NCBI GenBank assembly: GCA_965603825.1
Contig: CBFDEM010000024.1
Coordinates: 62,001-126,000, forward strand
Reading direction: 5' to 3'
Source: Blepharisma stoltei ATCC 30299
Taxonomy: Eukaryota > Protista > Ciliophora
DNA: 64,000 nt
In this document: in pieces, positions 31,720 through 39,255 of the stretch
Position numbering within the stretch: the stretch's first letter is position 1
How the letters are laid out: each line of letters begins with the position of its first letter
The notes under the pieces: model-generated
The model's database searches: none
What the model was told of the DNA's origin: nothing
Seen by the model: only the letters and a program-made list of their open reading frames with translations
Translations under genes and position numbers: made by a program

Positions 31720-32574
31720 TTAATTAGATTTGGAAAGCAAATACTCAGTTAAAAGGGTTATTTCGGGAAGAATTTCTTGAGAAGAGTAAGAATAAATAAA
31801 GCTAAGGCATTCTGTTATTGGTAAAGAAAAATTTGGGAATGATAAAGTGCATAATATTGTTTTTAGCATTTTATCGGTAACTTTGGCTTGTATGCAGCTG
31901 CAATCTTGTGTTTTCGCATAAAAGTCTAAGGAGTTATCAGTCAGGTTTTCGTCTATATTTGAAGGTGGATTTTTAACACCTGACACAATTTCTTTCACAA
32001 AATTGATAAAAACGCTTTTGGAGATACTTGAAGCATCTTCAATATTTTTCCAATAAACCATCAAATAAAATAGCATTAAATCGTCTTTTTCTTCCAAAGT
32101 GATAGGCTGATGTGTAAATTTCACGAAATGTTTCCCAAAAGGAACTTTTTTCAGTCTTCCTCTTCACTCCCCTCTCAGCACCTCATAATTCCTCACCAGC
32201 AAAGGCTCCACAAATCTTTTGCTTTTCTGCGAATCCATCATCCACAGCATTATAGGTATCAAATTAAAAAACAACCTCGACCCTGCAGCTGCATATTTTT
32301 CAAATAACCCTTTAATTTCTATATCTGCCCTCGCTATACAACAATACAAGAAATTTTCCAAGCCATCACTATTTTCCAGGTTTTTTGCCTCCTCAATAAC
32401 TTTTGCATAGGCTTTAAACGTCTGTGAATCGACATCATAAAAATTGCTTTTTAGCATCCCTTCAAAAAACAATGGAAATTCCTCTGTTGTCCTAGGCTCT
32501 CTATAAGGAAAATCTTGGCTTTTTTGCGTCTGAACTCTGCCTGTGTCTACCTCATCTTCGCTAGAACTTTCCAT
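31720..32574 (-). CDS. Hypothetical helical protein with weak resemblance to hyccin/FAM126
   Basis: Two ORFs joined in frame by TGA at 32164 (284 aa); LFEKY..LFFNLIPIMLW..VEPLLVRNY resembles the hyccin core. Confidence 0.5.
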
Positions 32575-32590
32575 TTATATAAAATTCAAA

Positions 32591-33769
32591 ATGATTGAAG
32601 AAAGACTTGCCGCAGAGCTTCAACGTCGTCAGCTTGACCGTGAGCGAGAAAAGCGCGAAGTCCAGCGCATCTGTGCAGAGAGTGAAGAACTGCGAGATCT
32701 TCGCCAAAAGCTCAGTGCGGCTTATGTTAATAAAGAAAGAACAGCGCAGTTACAAGAACTTCACGCAAGACGTGAAGAGGAGGTCTTGAGAGACGCCTAT
32801 ATTGAAAAAGCGATGCTGAAAAATGCAGAAAATCAGCTTAAACTTCAAGCTCAGATGGAAGAAGAAAAGAAGCGTGAAAGGCTGAAGTCAAAAGAGGTGT
32901 TACAGCAGCAAATGATTGAGAGAGAGCAGTTACGCCAAGAAGCTTATAATGAATACCTTAGAGAAAAGGCCCAGGTTGATGCTTTGGTGCAAAAATTGAT
33001 TGATGAAGACCAAGACTCCTTAAGAAGGATGGAAGAAAAAAAGCAGCAAGCAATCAGAGATATGGAAGAAAGCGTCAGACTAAGACGAAACCAAATTCAA
33101 GCTGCAAGAGAGCGAGAAATGAGAGAAGCAGAAGCCCTGAGACAGTACCAGCTCGAAAAAGAAAGACGAGAAGAAGAAATCGCCTTACTCCGAGCTAAAA
33201 AAGAAGAAGCCAGAAACGAAATTTTTGACAGGCTGCAAGCTGAAGAAGAGCGCCGCCGTGCAGAACAAGACTACATAGAAAAGTTGCGAAACGACTTATA
33301 CTATGAAGAATTCGAATACAATGAAAGAATGCGTGACCAAGAAAGAGCTGAAAAAATGAACAAGATAAAAGAAGAACTTATGATTGCCAACGAGTACCAA
33401 AAGAAGCTCAAAGAAGAACAGAAAAAAGAAGACATCAGGCTTGAAAAAGAATTCAAAGAACAAATGATGAGAAAATTCGCTGAAGATGACAGAATTGAGC
33501 AAATGAACGCCCAGAAAAGGAGAATGAAAGAGCTGGAGCACAAAAGACAAGCTGACGCCTTGTGGCAGCAGAAGCTAGAAATGCTGCAAAGAGAAAGGGA
33601 AAGAGAAGCAGAAGAGGAAAGAAAGACAAAAGAAGAAGAAATGAGAAAGAAAGAAATTGTGGAAAGAGAAAGGCAAAGACTGCTTCAGGAGTACGCTCCT
33701 CATGTGGCTGAGTTTTTGCCGAAAGGTACTTTGAGAACGCAAGACGAAAGAGTTTACTTAAGAAGATAA
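32591..33769 (+). CDS. MNS1: MNS1-like axonemal coiled-coil protein (TPH domain)
   Basis: ESEELRDLRQKLSAAYVNKER, KFAEDDRIEQMNAQKRRMKELEHKR, FLPKG; first ATG at 32591. Confidence 0.9.
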   Translation: MIEERLAAELQRRQLDREREKREVQRICAESEELRDLRQKLSAAYVNKERTAQLQELHARREEEVLRDAYIEKAMLKNAENQLKLQAQMEEEKKRERLKSKEVLQQQMIEREQLRQEAYNEYLREKAQVDALVQKLIDEDQDSLRRMEEKKQQAIRDMEESVRLRRNQIQAAREREMREAEALRQYQLEKERREEEIALLRAKKEEARNEIFDRLQAEEERRRAEQDYIEKLRNDLYYEEFEYNERMRDQERAEKMNKIKEELMIANEYQKKLKEEQKKEDIRLEKEFKEQMMRKFAEDDRIEQMNAQKRRMKELEHKRQADALWQQKLEMLQREREREAEEERKTKEEEMRKKEIVERERQRLLQEYAPHVAEFLPKGTLRTQDERVYLRR

Positions 33770-33783
33770 TAATTTTAGTAAAA

Positions 33784-36723
33784 TTATCCACGGAGTCTGA
33801 TAAGCTCGGTGACGAGCTGCTCTTCTAAATCACCGTCAGCAATAGTGAAAGGCGCGGAGTGGTCTTGGGAAACTAGAATAAGCTCTTGGTTTCTCATATC
33901 TAGTACATTGCCGACGACATAGTCAACTTCATATTTGGAAAGAGCATTATGGCAGGATTTGAGAAGCTCTTTAGGATCAGTTTCCAGCTTGAAAGAAACG
34001 ACTAAAGCTTTGCTGCAGATCTTCTTGATTAAGCCAAGCTTCTTTGGGGTAGGAACTAATGATAAATCTAGCTTAGGTAGGTCACTTTTGATTTTGTGGG
34101 TAGAAGGAGGCCCTGAAAGCATAAAGTCGCTTACAGCAGCTGACAGCACAAAAATGGTATTTTCTTGGTATTTTTTAGCCTCAATTGTAATTTCTTCTAA
34201 TCTTGCAAGGTAATTATCTACAGTGATAAATTCCTGGATCAGCAGCTTTCCTCCATCTTTATAGCTCTGGAATTTATTTATTAAGCTTTGAATATCTGCA
34301 GCAATTTCTGGTGTTTTCAGCACATCATGCTGATTTATAAGTCTTAAAAATGGCAATTTTCCTGTATTTCTCGTCAAAAATAGCACAGTGTAGCCTTTCT
34401 CCAAAAACTGCTCAGCGATTTTTGACCCTCTTTGCCCAGTGGAGAAATTTTCAATCGACCTAACAGTATGCTGTTCAAGAGGAACTGAGGTTCCACCTGA
34501 CGTAACCACTGCCACTTTTCCTTTGGCTTGCTCAAAGAATAGTTTTACTTCTTTTCTAAATGAAGAGTTCCCTGTGTATTCTTCATCAGAATTGAAAATT
34601 AATTGCAAACAGTGTCTGGTAACAGCATTCATAGCAGATATTCCTTCATCCCAAGAGACATTTCCTTCTTCTTGAGCCAAGTTGCTATTAGGGTCTAATG
34701 GCAAATCAGATACATAGTAAAGATACCTGCTCGGGACATCTTTTTTAATAAATCCTGCATCTATACCTTGCTGGACGCCTTGGGCGAAGTAGCAGCCTTC
34801 CATTTCTAAGCCAATGCAGCCTTGTAAATATAAATAGTATTTAAGCAAAAATGAATTTTGAAGCACCGTTCCGCCAACTGTAAGCATTGGCCCGACATGG
34901 ACATCACACTCAGCCATTTTGCTGAGCCTTTCTGGGTTGAGCCCTGAAGGATTAGCTCTTGTAACAGTCTGTGAGGTTTCGTCAAAAAACTTGGTAGCTA
35001 TCAAGATATCAGTTCTTTCTCCTACAAGTCCTCCTGCTTTTCCAATTATGTTAAAAGAATTTATAGAATTCCCAAACAGCAACGTTAAACATTTGACTAT
35101 ATCCAGGCACTGTTTCCCAAACGTATAGCCAATATTCACAACAAGGTGTAACAGTCCTCTAGGCTTAGGCACGAAATGGGGATCTACAAAGTTCGGGTCA
35201 ATTTTGCTGACATTAATAAGGAGTACTCTGACACCTGTCATCTCGGTTTCTTCAATTTTATGAATTCCTGCTGCTTTTTCTCTTTCTGCCTTTTTCACTT
35301 CTTCTTCTGGGAATTCTTTAAAGTAGTAATAAGCCATCGCACAAAGCTCGTCAATCGCGTTAGGGAATTCTTTGGTTTTCAATACTTTTCCAGACTTGCT
35401 GAACCATTCTTTGATATCATTTTGCTTTTCAAACACATAAGGACTTAGCGTGTTAAGCAGAGTTCTGGTGCTTCCTTGAATTACGTCGACAGTAAGTCCT
35501 AAGTTTATAGCTTCTCCAATAGAAACTGAGCCTACTTCTAAGCAGACCTGACACTCGTTCCACAGTCTAGCAGCCCATCTTTCACCTGGATCAGCTGTAA
35601 GATGCATTCTGGGGATATAAATAAACATATTGAAGTCTTCATGGTGGAGAATAATTTCTGCACATCTTTTATAGCAGTCTGTAGGCCAAATTTCTTTTAG
35701 CCCTTCCAGAGTTCCTTCTGGTAAGGCTAAGGAGTCCAATTGGTCATTATTTAAAAGCATTTGGATAATATCTGGAGTCCTTAAGAAGTCGCGCAGTTTT
35801 CTGCTTTCTAGGATATGAATGCACAAATTTGACAGAAAATCGAGTAAATCAGTTTCTAGCTCTCTAAATACAACGATATTTTTTCCTCTCATTTGAGTAA
35901 AAATTGTTCTGGCCCTTGCGCTGCTTTTTACTGGAATATTGAACTCTGGGTGGTTTAATATTAGTGGCAGCCTTGTGGTCCCATAAAACACAAAAGTACT
36001 TGTAATGTCTTCAGGGAGCCTTCTAATTGCATATTTTCAAGCTGAAATGTCAATTTCTGAATTATTCATCCCAGGGTGCAATGAAGAATTGATTTCTTTA
36101 TAAATTTCCACGAGCCTGATTAAGTCAATTTCTCCTCTTTGCGCTCCTTCTGAAACAAAGCTTCTGAATTTTTGTAAAGGCAAAAATATATGCTGCTTCT
36201 CTACGAGTGACCTTGCGATTAGTAAAGTAAACTGCTTTTCAGGGACGATGAGCTTCATTAAGCAGTCTTTTGGACAGATCATGACGATAGAGTCATCACT
36301 GGCTGTTTTTATTGTATAAGCTGTTTTTCCAAGTATGCAGCCTTCAATTCCAAAACTGTCTCCTGGGAATAGATATTCAGAAAAGCTGGAATTAGTGTCA
36401 GATGTCGCACAAGCTTGTCCTTCAATCATGATACCAAATTCACTTGTATCTCCAGAAATAAGGATTGGGAAATTTGATGCCCTGAAGTTTATGAATCTTG
36501 AAGAGCTGATCAATAGGTCTCTTTCTTCGAGATTGAGGTAGAGGAATGGTGGCGAAACTGACAGGAGTTTTTTGATTTTTTCATAGTCGTAAGTGATTTC
36601 TTCTTTAAGGCCAACGTGGGTTGAAAAAATTTTATTCTCACTTAAGGCTCTTTTGAGGCGAAGGGAGATGTGCTCTTGACTGAAAAGCTCGTCGACAAAG
36701 GACTTACCTGATGGGCTTGACAT
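33784..36723 (-). CDS. Fusion: cyclic-nucleotide-binding domain + DUF6909/nucleoside-phosphorylase-fold domain + phosphopantothenate-cysteine ligase (PPCS/CoaB)
   Basis: ORFs joined in frame by TGA at 36037 (979 aa); cNMP-like [18 protein letters not shown]; [37 protein letters not shown]; [39 protein letters not shown]. Confidence 0.85.
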
Positions 36724-37111
36724 ATTTATGCCAATGGTTGAATCCTATTAATTTCCGTAAATTTTGGGAATTTACGAACTGGTGACAAAGAAAATGAATA
36801 AAAAATATTTTTATGTTATATTTCTGATTTTTTAGAAATTGATTTATATCAAAAATATAATTTAAAATGACTAATTATGCTTGGGTATCTAATAAAATAT
36901 AAATTTTAAAAAATTATTATAATCTTCAATCTATATAAATACACATTATTATTTGTGGAGATTGATAAAATCGAGTCTTATTGTCTATACAATAGATTAT
37001 TTTTTTTATATCTAAACTGACACTATTCTTTTATTAAAGTAAAATATGATAGACTCCAAAAATAAAATATATAAAGTTCATGAATTAGTAGCAATTTTAT
37101 ACCGACAATTC

Positions 37112-38116
37112 TTACCTATTTTGAAGCTCTCGCTCTAGATTTTCAAACTGTTTATAGCAAAAATCAATATCAGGTCTCTCATAAGGATTGTTTCTTAGCA
37201 TAACCTTGACGATATCTTGAAATTTTTCAGGGATGTCATCCAGTCCTATATACTCTGAGTATGGCCCTTGAGTCAAAATATAGTAAACCATTAACCCATA
37301 AGAATACACATCACAATAAAACCCTCTATTCCCATTTAAAGCTTCTGGAGATGCAAAATCCTGCTCTTTGTACGTCATTTCGCTCTGAGTCTCCATGTTT
37401 AAATTGCTGCAGCAGTCCAAATCAAATATCACAGCTTTTCCTTCAGGACTTATAAAGACGCTCCAAGGGCTCAAATTCATTAGCACAGTATTTTTCATAT
37501 GCATAAAGCATAAGCCTCGTCCTATGTCTAAAATTAGTCCAAGTCTTTGTTTTAAATCTAAAGTATCATCTAAATATTCGTACAAAGTTTTAGGCAGATA
37601 TTCAAGTACGATGTATTTCTGATTATTAATTTTCGTATACCCACAAGTCTTTACAATATTTTCATGCCGTAATCTTGAGTTGCAATAAACAAGAAGCGGA
37701 ACTTTAAATATTTTTTTATCAGAATAAATAGCTTTAAGAAAATAATATTCGTCAGCAAGTTTGCAATAAAATAAGTCAGAATACATCTGATCTTTTTTAG
37801 GTTTAAATCAATTTTGAAAATTAATTGATTGAAATTGGCTTTTCTTTATTCTGAGTGAATTTTTTATTAAATTCCTATTATCCTGGAGTTTTTGCAGCTT
37901 TTCTCGTATTTTTAGTTTCAAAAAATTTAATAAATCAGAGTCTTCAATTCTAGAACTTTCTGAATTTGTTTTGTAAGACTCAGCGTTGTAAAAATCAAGG
38001 TTTGAAGTGCTAGCCGACATATCTGAGTGATTGTCCAATCAATCAGGATCAATTGGCAAATTGGCTTCTCTTACATATTTTTGCCTTTTTGCAGTTAAAC
38101 TATTACTCGGCTTCAT
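37112..38116 (-). CDS. TKL-like kinase-fold protein, probable pseudokinase
   Basis: Frame open from ATG 38116 via TGA at 38039 and 37808; LRHENIV, IVLEYL, DVYSYGL, PYERP; HRD and DFG replaced by LMN and DLD. Confidence 0.75.
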
Positions 38117-39255
38117 TTTTATGATTCTACAAATGTTAAAAATCTGAGATAGAGTGATAGAAAATATCACCGATGTAATTCTAGGCTTGCATGCAGCAAA
38201 TGTTATCGATAGTAGAGTCATGGCCATTTAGCTAAAAAGCTAAAGTATTGAGATCATCATGGGTTTATGCATTTCAAGTTAGCAAAGGTTATCATCAAAG
38301 AACAATAATTCAAAGACCTCTCACTATGCTTCCATATTATTACAAGAAACAGCGATAACTTTTATCACCAAATAGAGTATGAATTGGCAAAGAGGGAAAT
38401 TAAAAAGTCAATTTATGTTTGCGAATGAATAATGCCTATCAGCATTATAGGCTTAAGAGAAGAATTCGCTCTTAGGATTGATTAATATTTAATATCGATG
38501 AGGGAAAATTCCGAGAAACTATAGAACTGCTTTGCAGAGAATCTTTTCGAAAAGTGAGAAGGAATAATTTAGATAAATACAGGTGAACTTCAAGCAATTC
38601 TATCACATAATTATAAAGCAAATTCAATTCTACATAAGTTTAAAAAGTGTATTTAGAATTATAAGGGCAATATGGTTAAATTTCATAAAGTAATTTTTAG
38701 ACAGTCCTCGGAATATAGTCTAAGATTGCAAATAAGCTGATTTAAATTATACAGAGAGTACAGTATATCTTAAACTTAAAATTTATTCCAAATTGACACT
38801 TTCTTAGAATTATTATTAAAATCTAGAAATTTTATTGGACGAACGAGAAGAGAGCTGCTCATCAACTATATTGCGATTGTGTAGATGATAAATCTCACAT
38901 AGCTAAATATATATCTAATAAAATGATTTATTATTAAAATTATAATGGAATATCGAATCGAAAAATTAGATGAATTTCTTCCTGAGTGATTATTTTTAAT
39001 ATTTAAGATTCATAATTGTTTGGTTCTTAAAAATCTATAATTCTATAGCCATTAGATAATTTTTAAATAAATAATAAAAATATGACTATAGACAACTAAA
39101 ATGTTATTAATTCTTATTATAATTAACACGCTCTAATTAGATTTTTAGCATCTCATCTCCTTCAAGAAATCATTTCCTACAGTATCCTTCAAGATATCCG
39201 TTATTGGCATATAAAGCCATTTTAAGCGATTTCAAAGTTTAAATGTTATAAAATT

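Follow-up and report, generated by a model that had tools for sequence, protein, structure and literature searches.

A Blepharisma stoltei gene joining a cNMP-binding-like domain, a DUF6909 module of nucleosidase-like fold and phosphopantothenate-cysteine ligase

The heterotrich ciliate Blepharisma stoltei ATCC 30299 carries a gene that encodes, in one protein of 979 amino acids (aa), an N-terminal cyclic nucleotide monophosphate (cNMP)-binding (CNB) domain, a central DUF6909 module and a C-terminal eukaryote-type phosphopantothenate-cysteine ligase (PPCS). The gene lies on the minus strand of a 64,000-nucleotide (nt) stretch of DNA (assembly GCA_965603825.1, contig CBFDEM010000024.1, positions 62,001 to 126,000), which we call the window and whose numbering is used throughout. 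The CNB-DUF6909-PPCS fusion is real and undescribed. Our literature search returned no description of DUF6909, of a CNB domain combined with a nucleosidase, or of PPCS in ciliates, which agrees with the first-pass annotation of this DNA, whose author knew of no account of the architecture. As its explanation we favor, with reasonable though not high confidence, a bifunctional protein in which a housekeeping PPCS is combined with a purine N-ribosyl-cleaving DUF6909 enzyme and a degenerated cNMP sensor, as the sequences and the predicted structure suggest.

Gene structure and genetic code

Translation of the minus strand gave an open reading frame (ORF) of 979 codons with a single internal TGA and no other stop, as the first-pass annotation had reported, and the public protein collection holds an identical 979-aa product (P0001) with W229 at the TGA codon. 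Trp occupies the same column in Stentor coeruleus (P0011) and in the DUF6909 family consensus. In an ORF list made with translation table 11 the gene appears as two pieces, one of 228 aa and one of 735/749 aa; because the Pfam DUF6909 profile spans both, with profile positions 3-28 before the TGA and 31-535 after it, these pieces are one gene. A six-frame scan of the genome (41.46 Mb, 64 contigs, UGA read as Trp) returned one DUF6909 match, which scored 245.5 bits over profile positions 3-535 with one TGA inside. In-frame TGA codons also occur in neighboring and other genes of the genome, and these genes end with TAA or TAG. The published macronuclear genome of this strain comprises 41 Mbp, reads UGA as Trp and has tiny introns (PMC9942806). 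Searches used the pre-TGA and post-TGA pieces separately, and P0001 was used for folds and alignments. We conclude that the locus holds one real gene, from a heterotrich ciliate in which UGA is read as Trp.

PPCS domain

PPCS (EC 6.3.2.5/6.3.2.51) is an essential housekeeping enzyme of eukaryotes, in which it normally stands alone, and it releases AMP or CMP. Pfam DFP (PF04127) matched the 979-aa protein with an E value of 1.4e-21 (77.6 bits, cut-off 22), and the window PPCS also passed the cut-off when the whole genome was scanned. Along its entire catalytic domain the PPCS part matched two solved enzymes, yeast Cab2 (6ai8, E 3e-35) and human PPCS (1p9o/7edz, E 2e-33), and it was 34-47% identical to stand-alone eukaryotic PPCS, including that of Paramecium. 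As a benchmark we used the 51 alignment columns whose conservation reaches at least 92% among 25 stand-alone eukaryotic enzymes. The window PPCS retains 47 of them, the misses being the start Met and the conservative I769, S861 and T892, and the motifs TSGGT, NFS-G-RG, AAVSD, HKI, KLETD and GN (VVGN) are all kept. The domain is thus a complete eukaryote-type PPCS, as had been proposed from the sequence.

In the 41.46-Mb genome PF04127 gave only one match, the fused PPCS, which was also the sole match to a Paramecium PPCS query at E <= 0.1. Other genes of the coenzyme A (CoA) pathway are found elsewhere in the genome, namely three for PanK, two for PPCDC and one for dephospho-CoA kinase (DPCK). 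Because the fused domain keeps 47 of the 51 positions, is the only PPCS found and is accompanied by PanK, PPCDC and DPCK, it is very probably the working PPCS of the organism, responsible for step 2 of CoA synthesis.

DUF6909 module

Pfam DUF6909 (PF21850) matched the 979-aa protein at E 4e-61, with 207 bits for the post-TGA piece alone, so that the family named in the first-pass annotation was the right one. An AlphaFold2 (AF2) model that covered residues 1-720 and drew on 81 homologues reached a pLDDT of 91.3 and a pTM of 0.89. Without exception, the best Foldseek matches of this model in the PDB belonged to the NP-I enzymes (MTAN, futalosine hydrolase, uridine phosphorylase (UDP), PNP and Amn; from E 4e-8), and VIA-align superposed model residues 380-711 on DeoD (1xe3_E) with a Z score of 19.6 and an rmsd of 2.6 Å over 215 of 234 residues, and gave a Z score of 18.9 with MTAN (6aym). 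The PNP/AMP-nucleosidase fold anticipated for the central domain is thereby borne out. In the window protein the NP-I domain contains a helical insertion of ~65 residues at about residues 419-484.

At the level of sequence the relationship is distant. Pfam PNP_UDP_1 (PF01048; cut-off 25.1 bits) gave no match for the window protein at E <= 0.1, and DUF6909 relatives reach this profile at only 13.6-19.1 bits, under the cut-off; a comparison of the DUF6909 part with PDB chain sequences, Amn included, gave no match at E <= 1. DUF6909 is a remote relative within the NP-I superfamily and not a member of the PNP_UDP_1 family. Four ordinary PNP_UDP_1 genes are present elsewhere in the genome. Two of these four matches (G000:C21:133801-134532, L107; G000:C21:556328-556996, L108) lie in unusually long frames of 539 and 689 aa, respectively, which may encode further fusion proteins.

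The central motifs quoted in the first-pass annotation are present and contain residues that are invariant in the family, which include G561, K562, G611, G618, T619, Q622, M641, E642, R666, Y669 and P675; D673 is conserved in 80 of the 81 family sequences. With the E. coli mtn, deoD and amn sequences of an annotated record as references for residue equivalence, motif-anchored hhalign alignments placed M641/E642 at MTAN M173/E174, PNP M180/E181 and Amn M404/E405, D673 at PNP D204 and Amn D428, and K562 at MTAN S76. An Asp at the D673 position is typical of purine-specific NP-I enzymes. Arg, Lys or His occupies the R420 column in 78 of 81 sequences, in the loop after the first strand; the corresponding loop provides the phosphate ligand R24 in PNP and the water-activating E12 in MTAN. 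Judged from its position in the sequence, R420 would stand at the place of PNP R24, and together K562 and R420, at PNP phosphate-binding positions, hint at phosphate or a phosphorylated ligand. Because the NP-I fold is accompanied by the kept Met-Glu pair and the base-protonating Asp, DUF6909 is most likely an N-ribosyl hydrolase or phosphorylase whose substrate is a purine nucleoside or nucleotide, probably one of adenine.

The N-terminal subdomain of the module has invariant residues of its own (D225, Y231, R235, K281, R287, D292, D295, E306 and K309). Folded alone and compared with 48,161 PDB representatives it gave a best Z score of 3.8 and hence no known fold, and its score with the N-domain of Klebsiella pneumoniae Amn was 3.6. 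In the ESM Atlas it matched DUF6909 proteins only (TM 0.80-0.87). The subdomain is family-specific, with no known fold.

CNB domain

The profile Pfam cNMP_binding (PF00027) matched the 979-aa protein at E 4.7e-4 and 20.5 bits, under its cut-off of 27.5. The family profile matched the CNB-A/B domains of PKA RI-alpha at E 7e-19, and the AF2 model shows the β-barrel with flanking helices, in support of the cNMP-binding-like domain noted at first pass. In the phosphate-binding cassette (PBC) of such domains, a Glu contacts the ribose 2'-OH and an Arg contacts the cyclic phosphate. Of the 81 sequences in our alignment (A1), 65 have the Arg, whereas the Glu occurs only in 11 of bacterial type. Bacterial-type members (~650-700 aa) have the canonical cassette FGE...R, and members on eukaryotic contigs (~750-790 aa) have FGYD...R. 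Among the sampled proteins that bear a C-terminal tail, 16 of 18 have lost the Arg (replaced by Thr, Ser, Val, Ile or Lys), and the two that carry a NADAR domain keep it.

The window protein has Ile126 and Thr134 in place of the Glu and Arg. The absence of the canonical Arg had been recognized at first pass. Because both residues are lost, binding of cAMP or cGMP in the canonical manner is unlikely, and the cAMP/cGMP control that the first-pass annotation had envisaged is likewise unlikely. In this lineage the CNB domain would now be a structural relic, or else it would sense another ligand.

Fusion history

The architecture recurs on independent eukaryotic contigs. An intact PPCS tail follows CNB and DUF6909 in P0002 (78% identity), in P0003 (57%) and in P0005 and P0006 (~1157 aa), which have an additional N-terminal NADAR domain; independent assemblies of other organisms thus contain the fusion at identities of 78%, 57% and 49%, and it is conserved in at least five intact-PPCS proteins from three lineages. 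The NADAR-CNB-DUF6909-PPCS proteins are encoded on contigs of uncultured, ciliate-like origin (P0005 at L011:6001-9474 and L012:6001-9474; also P0006). Neighboring genes on such contigs include those for STIL, CCDC39 and RPL28e, and on L011 and L012 a separate 445-aa cNMP-binding protein is encoded immediately downstream. A further protein, P0026, has NADAR, CNB and DUF6909 with no tail; because it belongs to a different clade from P0005 and P0006, NADAR apparently joined DUF6909 at least twice.

Other relatives carry a decayed tail. In the Stentor-type proteins of ~940 aa, namely P0011 (S. coeruleus SteCoe_5646, L105:3001-5820), P0009, P0012, P0014, P0018, P0022 and P0024, a tail of ~240 aa is homologous to PPCS (29% identity, E 4e-11), keeps 8-11 of the 51 PPCS positions and has none of TSGGT, NFS-G-RG, AAVSD, HKI and KLETD, which by sequence makes it a pseudo-enzyme. 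In P0007, P0013, P0016, P0020 and P0025 the tail is shorter (~175-187 aa) and still more degenerate, with 7-8 of the 51 kept. Both groups keep all DUF6909 invariant residues. The closest stand-alone PPCS sequences (P0121 and P0124) do not share a sample with the Stentor-type P0009.

A maximum-likelihood tree of the DUF6909 part (quick method, LG+G4, midpoint root, no rows left out) recovered the tail-bearing proteins, all 18 of them, as a single clade (SH-aLRT 99). The two types with degenerate tails formed one branch (SH-aLRT 98) that was sister to the intact type, and the bacterial sequences stood apart (SH-aLRT 100). The simplest history is that PPCS was fused once, at the root of a heterotrich-type clade, and that the ligase later decayed in the Stentor branch; on our reading, PPCS kept its function in both the Blepharisma branch and the NADAR-bearing one.

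Family distribution and genomic neighbors

CNB plus DUF6909 is the usual architecture of the family. When one genome per GTDB species was scanned, 148 genomes encoded it, mostly of Spirochaetota, Myxococcota, Gemmatimonadota and Planctomycetota, and all of their proteins aligned from query position ~50 to 712. An exhaustive HMMER search of 1.84 billion representatives yielded only 350 DUF6909 clusters (50% identity) at E <= 1e-3. The earlier description of the family as mainly bacterial captures the ~148 bacterial species and is incomplete, since many members sit on eukaryotic, ciliate-like contigs. The ESM Atlas contains a Chloroflexota-dominated DUF6909 cluster of ~640 aa with no recognizable cNMP-binding domain; because of this cluster, the sensor is not universal in the family.

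Among bacterial members, P0300 (903 aa) has a response-regulator receiver domain before CNB and DUF6909, the sole additional input domain observed. A double-receiver response regulator adjoins the gene in 24 of 80 bacterial loci, mostly of Spirochaetota (e.g., L088:8135-9382), and in several loci it lies only 18-76 nt downstream of the DUF6909 gene. This suggests two-component input to the enzyme family. Clustering of the flanking ORFs of the 80 loci recovered shadow ORFs, the double-receiver regulator, MlaE/ABC transporter genes and PheRS, and no metabolic clue. Upstream of the gene for P0002, the 78%-identical orthologue, lies an adenosine/AMP-deaminase-family gene on the same strand at a distance of ~290 nt (L013:3624-4712). 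We dropped a functional link to this gene, as the upstream gene in the window (37112-38227, minus strand) encodes a protein kinase and the adjacency is not conserved.

Table 1. Features of the CNB-DUF6909-PPCS gene in window coordinates (residue numbers refer to the 979-aa protein)
Feature	Position	Strand	Basis or remark
Whole coding sequence, 979 codons and TAA stop	33784..36723	-	Translation of the window
Start ATG; TAA stop	36721-36723; 33784-33786	-	Same 979-codon ORF
In-frame TGA, Trp229	36037..36039	-	P0001, Stentor and family consensus
CNB fold, residues ~40-195, β-barrel 76-151	36139..36606	-	Family profile versus PKA RI-alpha; AF2 pLDDT 92-98
Degenerate PBC, residues 124-137	36313..36354	-	Glu replaced by Ile126, Arg by Thr134
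DUF6909 N-terminal α/β subdomain, residues 196-384	35572..36138	-	AF2 pLDDT 87.9; no solved fold
DUF6909 C-terminal NP-I (PNP/UDP/MTAN/AMP-nucleosidase) domain, residues 385-711	34591..35571	-	Foldseek, VIA-align
GKAGG motif, G561-G565, invariant K562	35029..35043	-	K562 at the MTAN Ser76 / PNP Ser90 position
E640-M641-E642	34798..34806	-	Equivalent of the ribose-binding Met-Glu; hhalign
S672-D673	34705..34710	-	Equivalent of the catalytic Asp (PNP D204, Amn D428; MTAN D197 by motif)
Linker of ~14 residues (712-725), DUF6909 to PPCS	34549..34590	-	pLDDT <50 from residue 714
Eukaryote-type PPCS domain, residues 726-979	33787..34548	-	Pfam DFP; Cab2/human PPCS matches; 47/51 positions
TSGGT motif, residues 741-745	34489-34503	-	PPCS signature
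Gapless transcript-like contig, run X1	32596..36747	.	Spans the gene and its convergent neighbor; ends 24 nt upstream of the ATG

Transcript-like contigs and haplotypes

Four public runs (X1-X4), labeled "RNA?" and stored as contigs, contain the stretch and were compared over 32300-38000. The contig of X2 covers 32601-36715 and, like that of X1 (Table 1), has neither joints nor indels, in keeping with the first-pass statement that the gene has no intron-like gap; no 15-16-nt intron had been spliced from the 979-codon gene in the run contigs. The contigs of X3 (34391-36204) and X4 (34082-36204) both span the junction between DUF6909 and PPCS, which is therefore crossed by contigs of all four runs. 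A single transcript over 34500-34620, which the first-pass annotation had wished to see confirmed, is consistent with these contigs, which cannot in themselves prove it. In the upstream intergenic DNA (36884-37074) the depth is 0-1, and contig ends coincide with gene borders. Since the contigs stop at gene borders and depth falls between genes, the runs behave like transcriptomes.

X3 and X4 represent a second haplotype or strain that differs by 12 substitutions in the ORF, nine of them synonymous and three conservative (V/I/L). Their contigs break at haplotype sites (window 33999-34081 and 36205-36262). A convergent gene for a protein with a TPH (trichohyalin-plectin homology) domain (32507-33769, plus strand) has its stop 15 nt from that of the CNB-DUF6909-PPCS gene, and the X1 and X2 contigs fuse the two; their 3' ends probably overlap.

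Proposed function and alternative explanations

In the bifunctional protein that we favor, the PPCS tail would convert 4'-phosphopantothenate, Cys and ATP or CTP to phosphopantothenoylcysteine, AMP or CMP, and PPi. The DUF6909 module would act as a regulated purine N-ribosyl-cleaving enzyme with water or phosphate as the nucleophile. The CNB domain would be the ancestral sensor of the DUF6909 family, having lost its canonical cNMP ligands in the window lineage. We infer that the fusion provides co-expression or co-assembly, and possibly regulation, and not an obligatory substrate channel. Several points weigh against this explanation. The residue equivalences with MTAN, PNP and Amn come from weak single-sequence hhalign alignments (E 0.04-0.08) that were anchored on motifs and not on a superposition of coordinates, and where Amn has the phosphate ligands R381 and K436 the window protein has Q622 and N681. 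The genome scans score the best candidates only, which leaves some room for a very divergent second PPCS. The runs are only presumed to be RNA, and their contigs would be compatible with an internal start.

One could first ask whether adjacent CNB-DUF6909 and PPCS genes were wrongly joined in the gene model or the assembly. Genes are densely packed in ciliates, and in the run contigs this gene is even continuous with its convergent neighbor. Yet no stop, frame change or spacer separates the domains, the PPCS part has neither a start-proximal Met context nor an N-terminal region of its own, contigs of all four runs cross the junction, and the fusion recurs in independent assemblies at identities down to 49%. 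We therefore regard such an artefact as highly improbable. A biological alternative is that the PPCS-like tail serves as a regulatory or scaffolding module, for instance a sensor of a nucleotide- or pantothenate-derived ligand or a dimerization device, its ligase activity being incidental or lost. Relatives do retain a dead homologous domain, so that a non-catalytic role can be selected, and gain of the tail coincides with loss of the Arg from the CNB cassette, as though one sensor had been exchanged for another. However, the window protein holds 47 of the 51 PPCS positions and is the sole PPCS of a genome with PanK, PPCDC and DPCK, and the haplotype differences in its PPCS part are synonymous or conservative. 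A scaffold or sensor tail fits the Stentor-type proteins and not the window protein, for which we consider it quite unlikely.

The first-pass annotation had offered a tighter coupling, in which the nucleosidase removes or senses the AMP or CMP released by PPCS and the CNB domain places this CoA step under the control of cAMP or cGMP. The product chemistry of PPCS agrees with such a scheme, as do the purine-type Asp of the NP-I domain and its Amn-like SD-x-PL motif, the separation of DUF6909 from PPCS by only ~14 residues, and the conservation of the fusion with intact PPCS in three lineages. On the other side, the cassette has lost its Glu and Arg here and the Arg in nearly all tail-bearing proteins (16 of 18), the phosphate ligands of Amn are not kept, and ~148 bacterial species and many ciliates have CNB plus DUF6909 with no PPCS. 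Because the Stentor-type and short-tail proteins keep the DUF6909 invariants with a PPCS that is dead at 7-11 of 51 positions, the role of the nucleosidase would be independent of PPCS turnover, and the decay in the Stentor type speaks against obligatory coupling of the two. Since relatives conserve the nucleosidase with a dead PPCS or with none, channeling cannot be the core function of the family. Taken as a whole, we think this coupling unlikely.

A broader proposal is that DUF6909 represents an unrecognized class of signal-gated purine-nucleotide N-glycosidases or phosphorylases whose substrate is tied to CoA metabolism. Candidate substrates would be the AMP released by PPCS, 4'-phosphopantothenoyl-adenylate, and the adenine nucleotide moiety of dephospho-CoA or CoA. 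We regard this as a speculative idea with little probability at present. If it were true, the heterotrich fusion would be a Rosetta stone joining CoA synthesis to adenine-nucleotide turnover, and the repeated joining of NADAR to the N-terminus would suggest ligands resembling ADP-ribose.

Significance

Whatever the substrate, the only PPCS copy found in this free-living ciliate is welded to a member of an uncharacterized enzyme family, and the fusion gives a first functional handle on DUF6909 by placing a putative purine N-ribosyl-cleaving enzyme beside a nucleotide-consuming ligase. In the family itself a sensor is combined with a subdomain of no known fold and with a nucleosidase/phosphorylase fold whose catalytic set is intact. 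The intact PPCS of the Blepharisma type and the dead PPCS of the Stentor type constitute a natural experiment in which an enzyme domain turns into a pseudo-enzyme. For genome annotation, searches for a PPCS of ~300 aa would call CoA synthesis incomplete in these ciliates.

Comparison with known systems

An N-terminal CNB sensor in front of an effector domain is an arrangement shared with PKA R, CRP and Pycsar effectors such as PycTIR. The DUF6909 family profile matches the CNB domains of PKA-R and PycTIR, and the bacterial member P0116 gave a weak match to PADLOC models of PycTIR in their CNB part. PNP-fold ATP nucleosidases act in bacterial immunity (bioRxiv 10.1101/2023.01.24.525353). In contrast to Pycsar and ATP-nucleosidase effectors, the window protein has a degenerate cassette, and the bacterial neighbors of DUF6909 genes are housekeeping or signaling genes and not defense islands. 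We dropped a Pycsar-like effector function for the window protein, as neither of its pieces matched PADLOC.

Amn (E. coli 1t8s, K. pneumoniae 7uwq) resembles the window protein in having an extra N-terminal domain before the NP-I fold and in sharing the Met-Glu pair and the Ser-Asp-x-Pro-Leu motif. However, the N-subdomain of the window protein is not an Amn N-domain (best Z 3.6-3.8), and Amn has neither a CNB domain nor PPCS. The 5'-phosphate ligands of Amn also include H188/Y189, contributed in trans; the window protein has neither an Amn-type N-domain nor R381 and K436, and so falls outside the Amn class. In Amn, M404, E405 and D428 bind the base and sugar, and R381 and K436 are phosphate ligands (PMC9584410). 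DeoD and MTAN are the best structural matches, and GKAGGL of the window protein resembles GSAGGL of MTAN, whereas identity is only 13-20% and the window protein adds the ~65-residue helical insertion and a subdomain of 190 residues.

Human PPCS and Cab2 align with residues 726-979 of the window protein (254 residues) along the whole catalytic domain, with their motifs kept. Unlike these enzymes, which stand alone as eukaryotic PPCS of ~270-400 aa, the window PPCS forms the end of a 979-aa protein and lacks a separate N-terminal region. Bacterial CoaBC (Dfp) likewise joins a PPCS domain to a second enzyme, and the NCBIfam model coaBC_dfp matched the 979-aa protein in its CoaB part only (E 6e-20, far under the cut-off). 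The partner in CoaBC is an N-terminal flavoprotein PPCDC, itself the next enzyme of the pathway, whereas the partner in the window protein is a CNB domain with an NP-I-fold enzyme that has no known role in CoA synthesis, and PPCDC is encoded separately in the Blepharisma genome.

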